From the NCBI GenBank assembly GCA_033442325.1, contig JAWQFM010000013.1, forward strand, positions 1,312,876 to 1,376,875: DNA of 64,000 bases, read 5' to 3'. Origin of the DNA: Salpingoeca rosetta. Lineage: Eukaryota > Protista > Choanoflagellata. Under the pieces are notes generated by a model. That model saw nothing but the letters and a program-made list of their open reading frames with translations. It did not search any database and was not told where the DNA came from. Of the stretch, positions 13,430 through 19,014 are shown one piece after another (positions within the stretch are counted from its first letter, which is position 1; each line of letters starts with the position of its first letter). A program made the translations under genes and the position numbers.

Positions 13430-16400
13430 CTACGTTGAATTGGTCGATGATGACGATGCTGCTGGCTGGTTCAATAGCGTGACTTTTGTAGGTGACACCT
13501 GCAGAGCCAAAGGAAGAAGGTGAAGCCATGAGAGTCAAACTTCAAATGTGTAAATGCATGTATGCGCGCACAGGTGTTTGCCTGCTGTGCAGACCTTCTC
13601 CCTTTTGTTGAATTTGATCCTCACACAGACACACTTACACTTACACTTACACTTACACTTACACTTACACTTACACACTCTCTCTCTCACGCGCACACAC
13701 ACACACACATTTGCGCGTTTCAGCGCCACTCACTCACTCACCAAGACGCCATGCTTGGGACGGCACGAAAAGTATTGAAAGTCGGCCACGGTGCCGTTGT
13801 TGAGACCAATGGGGCGATCCAACTCAACACCGCAGCGCGGGCCAGGTTTGATCTGCGATTGCCAACAAGTGAATGCAGAAAGGAGAGAAGTGGAGGGGAG
13901 AGTTGTGGTGTGATAAAAGTATGCAGGCACGCGGTGGCTTGTGAGGGGGCGATGGACACACATGACAAGAACCCTGGCTGAGGCAACTGTGAGTGCACAA
14001 ACAGTGAAGCTGGAACTCGCTGAGGACGCAACAGCGCTGACTGATTGCTCTCTTGCTTTGCTTGCAGGCAAGCAAGACAAGACAAGACACATGGAACACA
14101 CAGAACACCGAGGAGGAAATGTGCACAAGAGAGACATTGCACATCAACACGCACCGCATGTGGGCCATAGAAACGAAGCGTGCCCTCGCCATATCCCGTG
14201 ACAGTCACACGTGATCCTTCCCTGCCGATGAACTGGGGGTAGGACGGGCCGTCCCTAGTGTGCACGCGTTAAGGATTTGCAGTGAAAATGATGCAGACAG
14301 AATCACAGGAATGAGAAACAAAATTAAGAAATGAATGTGTGTATGTCTCTGTGCGTATGTTTGTATGTGTGTGTATGTTTGAGTATGTGTGTGCACGCGC
14401 GCGGGAGAAAAGCGACAGCAACTGCAGTGACAACCATCTTACACACGCACACGCGCGCGGAAACTCGACAACGTACTCGTGCAGTCTGAGCATGTGTCTG
14501 CTGTCTTCATGCACTTCCATCTCGCGGCACTTGTACATGTTGAGCTCCTTGCGAATGGCAGCCTGTGTGTGTGTGTGTGTGTGTGTGTGTGTGTGTGTGT
14601 GTGTGTGTGTGTGTGTGTGTGTGTGTGTGTGTGTGTGTGTGTGTGTGTGTGTGTGTGTGTGTGTTTGCGGTGGGTGAATGAGAGTGCATGAGCAGGTTGT
14701 TCCTGGTCCAGCAATTTCAGGCATGGACACATGACCGGTCACAGCACATGACGCAAGCGTCACACAATAACGGCAGCTGTCAACTGGTGAATTCGCACCT
14801 TTTCCTCTCTTGTCAGCCGTGTCCAGGTTGGATCAGCCCTGATAGGTGGTGACATGGAATGCGTTGAGCGCGTGGGAGGAATACGCAAAGTTGCAAAGTC
14901 GCAAAGTCCAAATACACGAATACAGGCACGCACGCACACACACGCACATGTTTGCACGTGTAGGCATTCGCATACGCACGCGCATATTCAACAAACATGC
15001 TCTTCACACTCTATAAAGCTTACTGCCGATCGTGCGAAGAAATGCCGTCGACAACGGTGACTTGCGGCGTCGTGTTGAACTTGAGCAGAATCCTGCGCTC
15101 AATCAACTCAGAGACGGAAGCACGCTGTGCAAGCTGTTCAAGGGTGATGATGGGAGGGGACGAGGACGACGAGGAGGACAACGAGGAGGGCAAGGAGAGA
15201 AAGTGGGCAGTAATTATTGTGAGTGAGCAGGTGACCGATGCAACAGGCACTCTGACACGAGGCTCTCGTGCACAATACATTGCACCACCCCCACAACAAC
15301 AACAACACCGATACAGCAACACAAGCCAAAGGCACGACTCAACGATAACTAATACACCAACAGCAACACCACACAGCACAACAACAGCAACAGAGGAGTT
15401 GACAGGAAACGCCCAGCACCTTGCGCTCGAGCGTGTTCATGACGACTTGCTTTGAAGCCGTCTGCTCGTATGTCTCCGTGCGCACGTGCCGTGTGCCGGC
15501 CTGGTCACGGAAACTGAGCCGGCGCTTCCTGCGTGTGGACCGTCTTCGCCGCCGTGTTGCTCTGCGCACAGGGCCATCGTCACCACCACTGCCATCACCG
15601 CCGTCATCACCGGTTGTGCTCTCTTGTCCCACTATTCCTTCCTCCGTCTCAACATCTTCCTCCTCTGTGATGGTCATCATCCCTGTGCTGTCGCCACCTG
15701 CAATAGTTGTCCGTCCTTCCGCGGCCTCGCGCGCAACTTCGCGCCGGAATTGGCGAATCCTAGACACGGAATCCTGCAGCACGGTGTGCGTGAGCGTGTG
15801 ATAGGGTGTGTGTGTGTATGTGAGTGTGTACGTGAGTGTGTGCGTTAGTGTGCGTTAGTGTGCGTGTTTGTGCGTGTATGTTGGCGTGCATGTGTGAATG
15901 TGTGTCCGTGTGCATGTGTGTGTGTGTGTATGTCACGTGATGCAGCGCAAAGGCACCGTGCAGGGTATCAGCTTGTTGTGCAGTTTGCTTGCAAGCAAGC
16001 ACCCATGAAACACGCCAGGTGCTTACCCTTCGACGCAGACGCGTTCCACGCTTCAGTATGCTTTTCAGTTTCTGAATGCAGGTCGATAACGTCACGGAAG
16101 CAGAACGTGAATCAGGCACGGAGGACAGCGTGAGGACACAATCACAGGCACATCGCTGGTGGGCATAAGCACTCCCAAAAAGGCAAGATGAACAAAACGA
16201 ACCAGAGTAACACACCCACATTCACACACACACACACACACACACACACACACACACACACACACACACACACACACACAAAAGCAAGCACACACAAAAG
16301 CAAGCACACACACACACATGAACACATGAACACAGGAGCATGAAACAAGTACACTCACGCGCTGCTGGCCGTCGACGGTGACGAGAAAGACGGGCTGGCT

Positions 16401-19014
16401 CGAGTCATCATCTGGAGCCGCATTGCCCTCCACAGCGTTGACCCAGTCCATCCACTTTGTGAACTGCTTGGCAGATGGTGGCCGGGATGTGTCACTGGAC
16501 ATGCTGTCCACCTTCTTCTGGAAGCGGATGGTGCTCCCCCTGCGCACCAACGAGCGCACGCCCTCTGAAGTTTCCTCAAGCAACTCGCTCTCACGCCGCC
16601 GCAGTGAGAGGTGGGTTTGCGAACCTCCTGTTGTGCATTGTCGCGCATGGCAAGCGTGAGAAGACCGAAGCAAGAGGACGCCACGACGTGTCACTGTCAG
16701 GGGCAAGAGTTGCAACACAGCCCTGGCTACACCACAACGGAGAGTGTGCAGACGCGCTCACACTCGCACATGTATGCGGGTACTGGGATCGTGGCTTGCA
16801 CGCACGCACAAACAAGCAAACAAACGAAAATATGCACGCACAAACACATACAGCGCCTTTCACTCACTCATGCACGCATGCATGCACACACACACACATG
16901 CATGCACACACACACACATATATGCATACACAAACACACACAAACAAATGCATACACAAACACACGAACACACACACACATATGCACACCTGGGGAGGCT
17001 GGGGTGCTTAGCTCATCCTCGCTCGATTCATCCACGTATGACTGGCGGCCAGATTCCTGGTGCTGTGCAGGCGGTGTTGCTGTTGTGATTCGCAGATTCT
17101 TGAACACGTCCTGGCCACCCACAAGCGCATTCATGTTCTCTGCTTCCTCCTCCTCCTGCTCCAGCGAGGCCTTTCGCTGCGCATTATTATCGCCGCAATC
17201 GTCACTGTCGGTGGCAGTTACGGTGATGCCGGTGCCATGTCGACGCAAACGGGTGGGGGCTTTGGCCTGCCCTTGCCGTGTTGGTGTGTCATTCGTCGCT
17301 GTCGTGCTGCCTTGTTGTTTGCGAGACACCACCATGGCTTCTGCGATTGCAATTAGCTCTTCGTCAACCACATCGCTGCCTCGCCCGCTTCGACCACCTT
17401 CTTGCTTGGAACGCTGACCATTGGCGTGGCCATTTCTCGTGTCACCATCGTCGTCCGCCTCATCGTCCGACACCATGCCAGCAAACCCGGTGTAGTCGTC
17501 GTCGTCGTCGTCATCTCCTTCCACCTTCACGACTGGGGTGGGTGTTGCTCTGGGTGTCGTGTCTGTGCTTGAGTTTTGCCTTGATCTGGGCCTTCGAGCA
17601 AGTGCCGGCGTCGGTGCGAATGTGGTGGGCACGGCGAGCAGGCTGCTGGACTTCTTGCCGTTGGCTCCCAGTGGAACCGGGCTGTGTCGCTGGTGGGTTG
17701 ACTGCACAAATTGGTTGTGCTGGTTGGCGGCAGCCGTGAGCGGTGATGGCGTTCGCGAGCGGCCAGCGACGCGGTGAAACGCCCCTCGTCCCGACGATGT
17801 CACTTCCGTGGCGTTCTTCTGTGTTTGCGCTTGCTGTTGTTGTTGCTGTTGTCGTTGCTGCTGCTCAAAGGCGACAATGACGTCGGAGGTGGGAGACGCG
17901 CCAAGCAGCCGCAGGTACTCTCCATCCTGGTAGTTGGGCGCCTTTCCATTGCCATGGGTCGCAAGCTGCAATGATCAACACGTGCATTCAAGATGAGAGG
18001 CCGGAAATACGAAGAGCAACAAGTCAAAGGAGTATGTGTGCGTGCATGTATGTGTGTGTGCGCGTTTGTTTGTTTGTTCGTGTGTTTGTGTGTGTGTGTG
18101 TGTGTGTGTGTGTGTGTGTGTGTGTGTGTGTGTGTGTGTGCGTGTGCGTGTGTGTGCGTGTGTGTGTGTGTGTGTGTGTGTGAAGAAGGCGTCATCACGA
18201 CCCCTCCGTCTACCTCATCGTCTTCCCCATCGTCGCCATCGCCCCAGCTAATGTTGTCGCCATCGGCAACAGACTCCTGATGCAAGGTGTGCGCTCCCGG
18301 GAAAGGTAACGCACTCATATCTGTGATATGAAGAAAGGAAGCACGCAACGTGCAATGGGGTCAGCGAAAGACTACTAGACTAAGATGATGTGCACAACTC
18401 TTGCACGAGTGACGCGAGGAACTCAACGCACAGAGCACTGTGGGTGTTTTCACGCACTAAACGCCCTCTGCACAGAGCACGGCAGGCGAATGTATGCAAG
18501 CACGCGTGCGTGAGACAACAGTAGGGAACCAAGGACGCAAGCAAGAGCAAGGTGGGCCATGCTCACCCGAGCCGTCGCTGGAGAGGGCCTGCGTGGTGAA
18601 GACGATGCTGGGTTCGTCGTGTTGATGGTTGTGGTGTTCCGTGGAGATGACGGTTGGGGTCCGGTGCTGCGTATCGTTTGGTCGTCGTAGGGTTGGATGG
18701 CGTTGTGGGGCCGTCTGTGGGCCCGGCGACATGTTGACTGTTGGGTGAGATGATGATGATGATGATGATGATGACAATACCGATGATGGGGATGGCGACG
18801 TGGTGGTGATGGTCTGCAGCTGGAGCCTTGCGTCAGCGTCGCGGGCACGCTTCCTGTCTGCAGCATCCGATTGGGTGCGGGCAATGACACGAGCAACAAG
18901 GTCTTGCTCTCGTTTGCGGCGCCGTGCATCTCGTATTCGAAAGAGACAGCCCGCAACAAACAGACAGGACACGAGCAATGATAGTCCGGACACCGCAACC
19001 ACCGCCAACATCAT
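13430..19014 (-). CDS. Phactr (phosphatase and actin regulator)-like protein with N-terminal transmembrane anchor and C-terminal CAP-Gly domain
   Basis: Exons join in frame from ATG 19014 to TAG 13432-13430. Contains TLERKLAQRASVSELIERRILLKFN...[44 protein letters not shown] (Phactr RPEL plus PP1-binding C-terminal domain), then GSRVTVTGYGEGTLRFYGPHAIKPGPRCGVELDRPIGLNNGTVADFQYFSCRPKHGVLVSPTKV (CAP-Gly). Confidence 0.85.
14564..14664. repeat. (GT)n on + strand = (CA)n on sense strand, running directly into the acceptor CAG of the Phactr PP1-binding exon
   Basis: Reverse complement reads ...cacacacacag|GCTGCCATTCGCAAG. Confidence 0.95.

Follow-up and report, generated by a model that had tools for sequence, protein, structure and literature searches.

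The feature under study lies within a window of 64,000 nucleotides of Salpingoeca rosetta DNA, the whole stretch that was analysed. It is a single gene on the minus strand, the strand of every feature described below, with 12 exons running from 19014 to 13430 and encoding a protein of 904 residues. An in-frame TGA stands immediately 5' of the ATG at 19014, every intron is of the GT..AG type, and there are no frame breaks. The translation is letter-for-letter that of the public protein PTSG_05702 (XP_004993567.1, UniProt F2UAZ1), which bears out the single in-frame spliced chain proposed in an earlier sequence-only reading; the sequence features described there are likewise present where that reading had placed them on the minus strand. 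The public name is merely "hypothetical / CAP-Gly domain-containing protein". An annotation update is justified since the public record misses the homology to Phactr proteins described here.

Exon 1 (18567..19014, residues 1-149), identical to that of the public model, begins with a hydrophobic segment (19014-18940, residues 1-25) followed by the basic cluster RIRDARRRKR, which extends to 18910. A hydropathy scan confirmed this arrangement, which had already been claimed for 19014-18910. The Kyte-Doolittle mean over 19 residues is 2.5 at the N-terminus, windows above 1.6 begin at residues 1-10 only, and the 904-residue protein has no other such segment. The chain is uncharged before the segment, and the basic cluster after it puts positive charges on the predicted cytosolic side. 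On the basis of hydropathy, charge, and the gene model, the N-terminus is a predicted membrane anchor. Exon 1 also encodes a Ser-rich low-complexity stretch that includes a (TCA)n run near 18774-18748. Exon 2 (18214..18320, residues 150-185), found in both the model and the public protein, is acidic and disordered. Exon 3 (16990..17965, residues 186-510) encodes an extended disordered region with abundant Ser, Thr, Arg, Asp, and Gln, in which no family scores above its Pfam cut-off. When exon 3 was searched exhaustively against proteins, it matched residues 186-510 of the 904-residue public protein and returned no relative other than PTSG_05702 itself among 1.84 billion representatives.

Animal Phactrs contain four RPEL motifs, one N-terminal and three C-terminal, the latter three forming a trivalent domain that binds G-actin. 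In PTSG_05702, equivalents of RPEL-N, RPEL1, and RPEL2 are absent by Pfam and by alignment. Exon 4 (16359..16627, residues 511-600) carries an incomplete RPEL-like stretch, LSLRRRESELLEE, and Pfam does not detect an RPEL at residues 517-530. It is followed by a basic micro-exon, exon 5 (16027..16071, residues 601-615; KLKSILKRGTRLRRR). Exon 6 (15420..15773, residues 616-733) encodes an acidic stretch followed by a polybasic run, RRATRRRRRSTRRKRRLSF, which occupies the place of RPEL2 in animals. Its final seven codons (15440-15420) begin the only RPEL of the protein, at residues 730-749, which scores 22.3 bits against the Pfam PF02755 cut-off of 23. The remainder of the motif, LAQRASVSELIERRIL, is encoded by exon 7 (15024..15133, residues 734-769). 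This exon matches RPEL3 of Phactr1 in the structures 4B1Z and 4B1Y, which identifies the motif as the RPEL3 equivalent. The Arg, the EL pair, and the hydrophobic positions of the motif are retained, and RP is replaced by RA, as it also is in an RPEL of a Trichoplax Phactr.

Sequence comparison supports the Phactr signature recognized in the earlier reading. In a column-by-column alignment, residues 727-811 share 49-60% identity with the PP1-binding tail of animal Phactrs, and a match to the Phactr1 chain in the PP1 complexes 6ZEE and 6ZEF (E 3e-7) comes from exon 9. In exon 7, the RPEL3-like motif overlaps LLKF, a non-canonical motif of the RVxF type. Within 15024..15133, LLKF is followed by the phi-phi stretch (VTVV) and by the Arg motif (the R of HDRQ). 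The Trp motif (the W of PTW) is encoded by exon 8 (14799..14838, residues 770-783). Exon 9 (14477..14562, residues 784-811) supplies the amphipathic helix and the remainder of the PP1-binding tail (AAIRKELN...HMLRLHE). The roles of individual Phactr1 residues in PP1 binding have been described (PMC7599070). Nearly all PP1-contact residues of the Phactr1/PP1 crystal structures are kept, as is most of the basic rim. Conserved positions in Phactr1 numbering are L519, F522, R536, W542, R544, L545, K550, I553, R554, E556, L557, K561, E564, H568, R576, and H578; of these, L545, I553, E556, L557, K561, and E564 belong to the helix and H568, R576, and H578 to the tail. F560Y, L574M, and F577L are conservative changes. 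R579E, P580D, and the replacement of Y534 by His speak against binding in the manner of Phactr1. The C-terminus of Phactr1 turns back onto its helix, the P580 carboxylate forms a salt bridge with R554, and R579 belongs to the basic rim (PMC7599070). In PTSG_05702, exon 9 lacks a stop codon and ends in phase 2, so that the chain runs 93 residues past the tail and the free C-terminal carboxylate is lost. Together with R579E and P580D, this loss changes the end of the tail where Phactr1 has its basic rim and intrachain salt bridge. PP1-type genes are present in the S. rosetta genome, and no second Phactr tail was found in it.

The chain continues into a CAP-Gly domain encoded by three exons. Exon 10 (14155..14254, residues 812-845) encodes a linker of 8-13 residues and the first third of the domain, which starts near 14217. 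Exon 11 (13742..13852, residues 846-882) encodes the core (Pfam E 3.8e-12). Exon 12 (13430..13498, residues 883-904) completes the domain at about 13481 and then encodes a Ser-rich tail up to the TAG stop codon at 13432-13430. In a Pfam search of the whole protein, CAP_GLY (PF01302) matches residues 825-888 (E 4.6e-19, 68.5 bits against a cut-off of 26.5) over model positions 2-65, or 64 of 65, in agreement with the complete domain claimed previously. The best structural matches are CAP-Gly domains from CLIP-170, CLIP4, and KIF13B (E 1e-15 to 1e-9). However, compared with those of CLIP-170, CLIP4, KIF13B, and p150Glued, with which it shares the full-length fold, the domain has three differences. 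The GKNDG signature for binding tubulin tails reads GLNNG (Lys to Leu and Asp to Asn, with the Asn at position 3 kept), Arg takes the place of the usual Trp, and Leu stands at the last aromatic position. The Trp is kept in 9 of the 15 other CAP-Gly exons of S. rosetta. Five other S. rosetta CAP-Gly exons and a EukProt protein (P0216) display the same altered pattern, which looks, from these sequences, like a distinct subtype. The closest paralogous CAP-Gly in the genome belongs to a transmembrane protein with TNFR repeats and lies in its cytoplasmic tail; thus, this type of CAP-Gly recurs on membrane proteins in S. rosetta.

The join between the Phactr tail and the CAP-Gly domain is supported by transcripts. 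The phase-2 intron at 14476-14255 is removed exactly as modelled in a 2299-nt contig (depth 174) of run X4, which is counted as RNA by inference from its spliced contigs. One raw RNA-seq read from run X19 is spliced at the same position, and the proposed in-frame junction of 14477 to 14255 therefore stands. Splicing likewise follows the model at the introns 14154-13853 and 13741-13499, with the junctions on both sides of exon 11 present in X4 contigs. Across these three 3' introns, to which the splice evidence from reads and contigs applies, the depth of the X4 contigs is even (174-189), and intron 9 is not covered. Support from raw RNA is slight, with two reads in X19 and none in X18. The 3' UTR reaches at least 13300, as an X4 contig covering 13300-13495 overruns the end of that interval.

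Among the databases searched, animals included, no other protein has both a Phactr tail and a CAP-Gly domain, and the literature search returned no paper describing such an architecture. The comparison of domain architectures thus agrees with the earlier remark that this arrangement is unfamiliar from animals, and extends it to other organisms. CAP-Gly appears to be a promiscuous module in the S. rosetta genome, which makes the fusion less surprising. We rate the fusion as a lineage-specific variant; what is new is the combination of Phactr and CAP-Gly with a predicted anchor. The fusion was found in one species only.

Several known PP1 regulators share parts of this design. Like PTSG_05702, animal Phactr1-4 (6ZEE, 6ZEF, 4B1Z) have the RVxF-phiphi-R-W string, the amphipathic helix, and a His-rich tail, and their RPEL3 overlaps RVxF. 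In contrast, PTSG_05702 has one RPEL rather than four, a polybasic run at RPEL2, and an N-terminal hydrophobic anchor. Whereas animal Phactrs end in ...FHRP-COOH, PTSG_05702 has Glu and Asp for R579 and P580 and continues into CAP-Gly. Spinophilin binds F-actin and is not membrane-inserted. In spinophilin and neurabin (PPP1R9), as in PTSG_05702, the string and a groove-remodelling helix are followed by a tail-binding domain, PDZ in the former and CAP-Gly in the latter. However, the sequences are unrelated outside the short motifs, and the appended folds differ. Spinophilin has been described as an RVxF-phiphi-R-W string with a helix and an adjacent PDZ domain (PMC7599070). Yeast Bni4 and membrane-tethered PP1 targeting subunits share with PTSG_05702 the concept of a scaffold that brings PP1 to a fixed site. 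Bni4 is tethered via septins rather than by a transmembrane segment, and to our knowledge other lipid- or membrane-anchored PP1 subunits are unrelated in sequence. The PP1-binding domain of Phactr1 has been reported to replace that of Bni4 functionally (PMC7599070).

Taken at the level of sequence, PTSG_05702, the single Phactr-family gene of S. rosetta, probably encodes a membrane-tethered regulatory (targeting) subunit of PP1. By homology, residues 727-811 would bind the PP1 catalytic subunit in the manner of Phactr1. The RVxF-phiphi-R-W string would wrap around PP1, and the amphipathic helix and tail would lie over its hydrophobic groove to form a composite, basic-rimmed substrate pocket. 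The absence of N-terminal charge, the approximately 23-25 hydrophobic residues, and the six positive charges that follow suggest an uncleaved signal-anchor, inserted with the N-terminus outside or lumenal and the remaining chain cytosolic. After the anchor, approximately 700 disordered residues with polybasic and acidic runs would serve as a tether, and the polybasic runs may also touch acidic lipids. Because the one remaining RPEL overlaps RVxF, G-actin could still compete with PP1, though without the cooperative three-RPEL assembly of animals; this switch is a weaker part of the mechanism. About 8-13 residues beyond the Phactr tail, the chain enters the CAP-Gly domain, whose fold takes hold of C-terminal peptide tails. 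The domain's place beside the phosphatase substrate surface suggests that it recruits or positions substrates or partners, and it resembles that of the PDZ domain directly after the PP1-binding region of spinophilin. With the signature of the CAP-Gly domain altered, its ligand could be a tubulin or EB EEY/F tail or something else.

A different reading takes PTSG_05702 as an actin-gated PP1 holoenzyme that is switched by G-actin as in animal Phactr1 and Phactr4, with its CAP-Gly domain on the EEY/F tails of tubulin or EB proteins where membrane and microtubules meet, for instance at the collar or the base of the flagellum. In its favor, the RPEL that is retained is the one overlapping RVxF, with its Arg, EL, and hydrophobic positions. 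Of the actin sensing put forward previously, the RPEL3 equivalent stands; however, it is a lone motif below the Pfam cut-off, with RPEL-N, RPEL1, and RPEL2 missing and a polybasic run at RPEL2. The microtubule link fares similarly. The fold is complete, the best structural matches are known microtubule binders, and the kept Asn is the GKNDG residue reported to hydrogen-bond the EE[Y/F] tail (PMC3806363). However, with GLNNG and with Arg for the conserved Trp, binding of EEY/F tails cannot be assumed. CAP-Gly domains with altered motifs, such as those of CYLD, are cited as binding non-tubulin partners. We consider this reading rather unlikely, and a placement at the collar or the base of the flagellum is purely speculative.

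The CAP-Gly domain could instead be regulatory and not targeting. It would fold back to occlude or reshape the pocket until a ligand tail engages, or would replace the free carboxylate. The linker between the pocket-shaping tail and the domain is very short, and the residues of the Phactr1 fold-back (the P580-R554 salt bridge and R579 of the rim; PMC7599070) give way here to Glu-Asp and a continued chain. However, the argument draws on one sequence from one species. CAP-Gly domains are generally tail-binding modules, and a regulatory role of this kind seems doubtful.

It is similarly improbable that the main product is soluble and lacks exon 1, for example through a start at Met151 in exon 2 or through another promoter, with the anchor being a prediction artefact or a minor isoform. 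Animal Phactrs lack an anchor of this kind, residue 151 is encoded by an in-frame ATG, and the splice evidence covers the three 3' introns, not introns 1 and 2. Against this, exon 1 is independently part of the public model, and intron 1 has canonical GT..AG ends and preserves the frame. Of the 2299-nt X4 contig, 2113 nt lie upstream of exon 9; exons 8 to 2 account for 1901 nt of these and leave 212 nt. This contig-length arithmetic, which is not a direct observation, puts the contig start at 18778, just upstream of the (TCA)n run in exon 1, the kind of repeat at which unitigs are expected to end. Additionally, X4 contains 0.52 of the sampled words of 13300-19200, a value that by a rough estimate would be hard to reach without exon 1.

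For the membrane-tethered PP1 subunit favored here, one further role may be considered. The CAP-Gly domain might form part of the substrate-selection surface, capturing the C-terminal tails of tubulin, of EB-like proteins, or of some other class that fits the Arg-type domain, so that nearby sites are dephosphorylated at the membrane. From the sequence this is a long shot. If true, it would represent a natural 'tail-reader plus phosphatase' design that is not known in animals, and the Phactr tail would tolerate or even exploit the loss of its free C-terminus.

This single choanoflagellate gene indicates that the PP1-binding module of Phactr type, including the residues of its substrate pocket, is older than animals. 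In PTSG_05702, the cooperative G-actin sensor of animal Phactrs is cut to one motif. The protein is a natural experiment in holoenzyme design, in which the specificity-shaping C-terminus of Phactr is extended into a domain that binds peptide tails. If the CAP-Gly domain recruits substrates, it would offer a new route to PP1 specificity and a way to study membrane-cytoskeleton signalling in the nearest relatives of animals.

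The gene under study, PTSG_05702, most likely encodes a membrane-tethered PP1 targeting subunit, and the sequence of its PP1-binding module identifies it as a homologue of the Phactr family. Unlike usual Phactr family members, it has neither multiple RPELs (G-actin-binding motifs) nor a free C-terminal tail, and it adds a predicted membrane anchor and a CAP-Gly domain. Its open chain of 2715 nt (904 codons and a TAG stop) comprises 12 exons on the minus strand of the window (19014-18567, 18320-18214, 17965-16990, 16627-16359, 16071-16027, 15773-15420, 15133-15024, 14838-14799, 14562-14477, 14254-14155, 13852-13742, and 13498-13430). 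All 11 introns have GT..AG borders, and an in-frame TGA lies immediately 5' of the first ATG. Among 1.84 billion representative proteins, exon 3 (325 aa) has a single true relative, P0001 (904 aa; residues 186-510), whose sequence is identical throughout to the translation of the 12-exon chain. P0001 is Salpingoeca rosetta PTSG_05702 itself (EGD74004.1, XP_004993567.1, UniProt F2UAZ1); the chain spliced by eye in the sequence-only reading was thus correct and coincides with an existing public prediction. The public names are 'hypothetical protein' or 'CAP-Gly domain-containing protein', and the Phactr homology is unannotated. Since introns interrupt the domains, Pfam searches of single exons miss most features, which a scan of the full-length protein resolves.

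Transcript reads and contigs were compared over window positions 13300-14563, which cover introns 9-11. Run X4, a sequencing run in contig form taken as RNA from its spliced contigs, contains roughly half of the sequence words in the gene region, a proportion in line with spliced RNA. In its contigs, 14476-14255, 14154-13853, and 13741-13499 (introns 9, 10, and 11) are precisely spliced out at equal depths (174-189), and intron 9 has zero coverage in the transcript data. Two raw RNA-seq reads from run X19 fall on 13300-14563, and one of them also crosses the 14477/14254 junction. Thus, the Phactr-to-CAP-Gly joint is the main spliced form rather than a read-through between two genes, in agreement with the splice across 14477-14255 that had been proposed from sequence. 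Exon 9 contains no stop codon, and retention of intron 9 would extend the frame by over 60 unrelated codons. Intron 10 (13853-14154), which lies inside the CAP-Gly domain, also occurs in a retained form in X4 (depth 24.5, versus 189 spliced; ~13%), which could represent either pre-mRNA or a minor isoform with a truncated domain.

The 3' UTR reaches at least 13300, and probably ~13100 judging from X4 contig size. A convergent plus-strand gene (12350-13050) ends near 13047, and its translation resembles a protein-kinase C-terminal lobe (DIWAIGC..., ...LLRHAFLRDA); the two transcripts may abut or overlap. Long (CA)n/(GT)n microsatellites lie in several PTSG_05702 introns and in the 3' flank (18080-18195, 16225-16290, 15800-15930, 14564-14664, and 13050-13150), and the (CA)n repeat at 14564-14664 exceeds 100 nt.

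By itself, exon 9 matches the Phactr1 chain in crystal structures of Phactr1 with PP1 (6ZEE/6ZEF; E 3e-7), and exon 7 matches RPEL3 of G-actin-bound Phactr1 (4B1Z/4B1Y). With residues 720-904 as the query, all relatives except PTSG_05702 itself are animal Phactrs, from Trichoplax and corals through vertebrates, with 49-60% identity confined to the first 44-49% of the region. The unnamed Logan proteins P0211-P0214, considered as non-animal Phactr relatives, prove to be animal Phactr exons that were mispredicted and carry read-through flanks. The tail was aligned with nine animal Phactrs using Phactr1 numbering (PMC7599070). In this alignment, the RVxF-type motif LIRF of Phactr1 becomes LLKF; R536, W542, R544, L545, K550, I553, R554, E556, L557, N558, K561, E564, H568, R576, and H578 are unchanged; and F560Y, L574M, and F577L are conservative changes. 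The Phactr1 residues so aligned wrap PP1 and form a hydrophobic pocket and basic rim that confer the substrate specificity of the holoenzyme (PMC7599070). PP1-type genes exist in the S. rosetta genome (G000), and the products of two loci, both broken into short exons, are candidate partners: G000:C17:410428-410517 (plus strand; STPPase_N match, E 8e-13) and G000:C7:84279-84389 (minus strand; STPPase_N match, E 2e-10). From the conserved contact residues and the presence of these genes, we strongly infer by homology that the PTSG_05702 tail binds PP1. A second Phactr tail was not found in the S. rosetta genome, where the sole other match (C33:500265, E 0.07) is no better than chance.

The sequence-only reading had described the protein as a candidate actin-sensing PP1 holoenzyme. 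Pfam places one RPEL in the full protein, at residues 730-749, with 22.3 bits against a cut-off of 23. It detects no N-terminal RPEL in the full protein, and residues 517-530 match only part of the pattern. The single motif aligns with animal RPEL3 and retains the Leu positions, Arg, Glu-Leu, and Ile-Leu; RA replaces RP, as also seen in one Trichoplax RPEL. The RPEL2 position is occupied by a run, RRRRRSTRRKRRLSF. In Phactr1, the overlap of RPEL3 with RVxF is the element that renders PP1 and G-actin mutually exclusive (PMC7599070). PTSG_05702 keeps this overlap; however, it lacks the multivalent array through which animal Phactrs bind actin, and its sole RPEL is sub-cut-off. Actin sensing is possible, judging from these motifs, and much less secure than for animal Phactrs. 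Elsewhere in the genome, two RPEL matches above the Pfam cut-off lie ~600 nt apart (G000:C12:1640590-1640652 and 1641206-1641271, plus strand), and another falls slightly under it (G000:C3:1409565-1409627, plus strand). No Phactr tail was found near the C12 and C3 matches, which may be part of other RPEL proteins, e.g., an MRTF-like gene.

The CAP-Gly domain is complete, as had been claimed: the Pfam scan of the full protein places CAP_GLY at residues 825-888 (E 4.6e-19). Among solved structures, its best matches are CAP-Gly 2 of CLIP-170, CLIP4, and KIF13B. GKNDG forms an almost invariant tubulin-tail-binding loop, whose Asn bonds the EE[Y/F] tail (PMC3806363). In contrast to typical CAP-Gly domains, PTSG_05702 has GLNNG at this loop, Arg in place of the Trp of CLIP-170, CLIP4, and nine of 15 other S. 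rosetta CAP-Gly exons, and Leu in place of the last aromatic residue. This conserved Trp is important in CAP-Gly domains, and its conservation is also evident in the alignments. A list of CAP-Gly residues in contact with EEY/F was not found in the open literature. The same pattern (GY..GTL, His, Arg, NNG, HG[VI]L) recurs in five other S. rosetta exons (L015, C14:278665; L016, C13:417519; L021, C33:56881; L022, C19:432405; L023, C5:1876796; all in G000) and in P0216, a coiled-coil protein of another eukaryote (EukProt). This shared pattern marks the PTSG_05702 domain as an apparent subtype rather than a product of decay. The Arg-type, defined by Trp to Arg, a G[KRL]NNG signature, and an HG[VI]L end, has six S. 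rosetta copies including PTSG_05702. An ESM Atlas structure search returned only generic CAP-Gly clusters (TM <0.5), and a feature search gave no usable match. Binding of tubulin or EB tails by this subtype is only putative. The altered loop and Trp weaken the proposed microtubule link. The stronger version of the proposal, in which the protein joins actin and microtubules, has the RPEL3/RVxF overlap and the CAP-Gly fold in its favor; with the actin array missing and the loop altered, it is unlikely.

The nearest Arg-type paralogue, on contig C19, is the C-terminal end of a 2226-codon open frame (L030:2199-8876, plus strand; G000:C19:426198-432875). Besides a TNFR/NGFR cysteine-rich repeat (E 3e-16), the frame has a single strong transmembrane segment near residue 1964. 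HRRRRRK follows this segment, and the CAP-Gly domain, which has the signature GRNNG and is ~60% identical by eye to that of PTSG_05702, comes last. The product is predicted to be a receptor-like protein of the membrane whose CAP-Gly lies in the cytoplasm. In the S. rosetta genome, CAP-Gly thus appears to be a frequently shuffled module, often on membrane proteins.

Residues 1-25 are the sole strongly hydrophobic segment of PTSG_05702 (19-residue Kyte-Doolittle mean 2.5), with no charge before it and RIRDARRRKR after it. By simple rules, this size and charge distribution fit a predicted uncleaved signal-anchor with the protein body in the cytosol, the only placement compatible with PP1. The X4 contig ending in exon 10 is 2299 nt long and extends 2113 nt beyond exon 9 on the 5' side. 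Exons 8 to 2 account for 1901 nt of this extension, and by arithmetic only, the leftover 212 nt would put the contig start inside exon 1, at 18778, just 5' of a (TCA)n run. This offers indirect support that exon 1 is joined to the downstream exons. A soluble protein without exon 1 is an unlikely alternative. Base composition by codon position separates exons and introns too poorly to support exon 1.

As a membrane-tethered PP1 targeting subunit, PTSG_05702 would be fixed to the membrane by its anchor, with a ~700-residue disordered stretch with charged runs as a tether. The Phactr module would recruit PP1 and shape its substrate pocket, and the single RPEL may allow G-actin to compete with PP1. 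The CAP-Gly domain, ~8-13 residues past the tail, probably captures the C-terminal tail of a partner or substrate, by analogy with spinophilin, in which a PDZ domain follows the PP1-binding region in a comparable place (PMC7599070). The C-terminus of Phactr1 folds back, and the P580 carboxylate bonds R554 (PMC7599070); the remaining changes in the PTSG_05702 tail are Y534 to His, R579 to Glu, and P580 to Asp. An alternative in which the CAP-Gly domain has a regulatory role and occludes the substrate pocket is unlikely.

Among the matches listed from a 5.8-billion-protein collection (168-1582 aa), no other protein combines a Phactr tail with CAP-Gly, in keeping with the earlier statement that the architecture was not known from animals; the fusion searches were based on shared words, the largest covering the best 120 matches. 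No paper on a Phactr-CAP-Gly fusion, a choanoflagellate Phactr, or PTSG_05702 was found in the literature searched. The fusion is seen in one species, S. rosetta, involves a promiscuous domain, and has a function deduced from sequence, all of which temper its significance. PTSG_05702 nevertheless reveals a pre-animal Phactr module and is a natural case in which to test what the Phactr C-terminus and an added tail-binding domain contribute to PP1 specificity.
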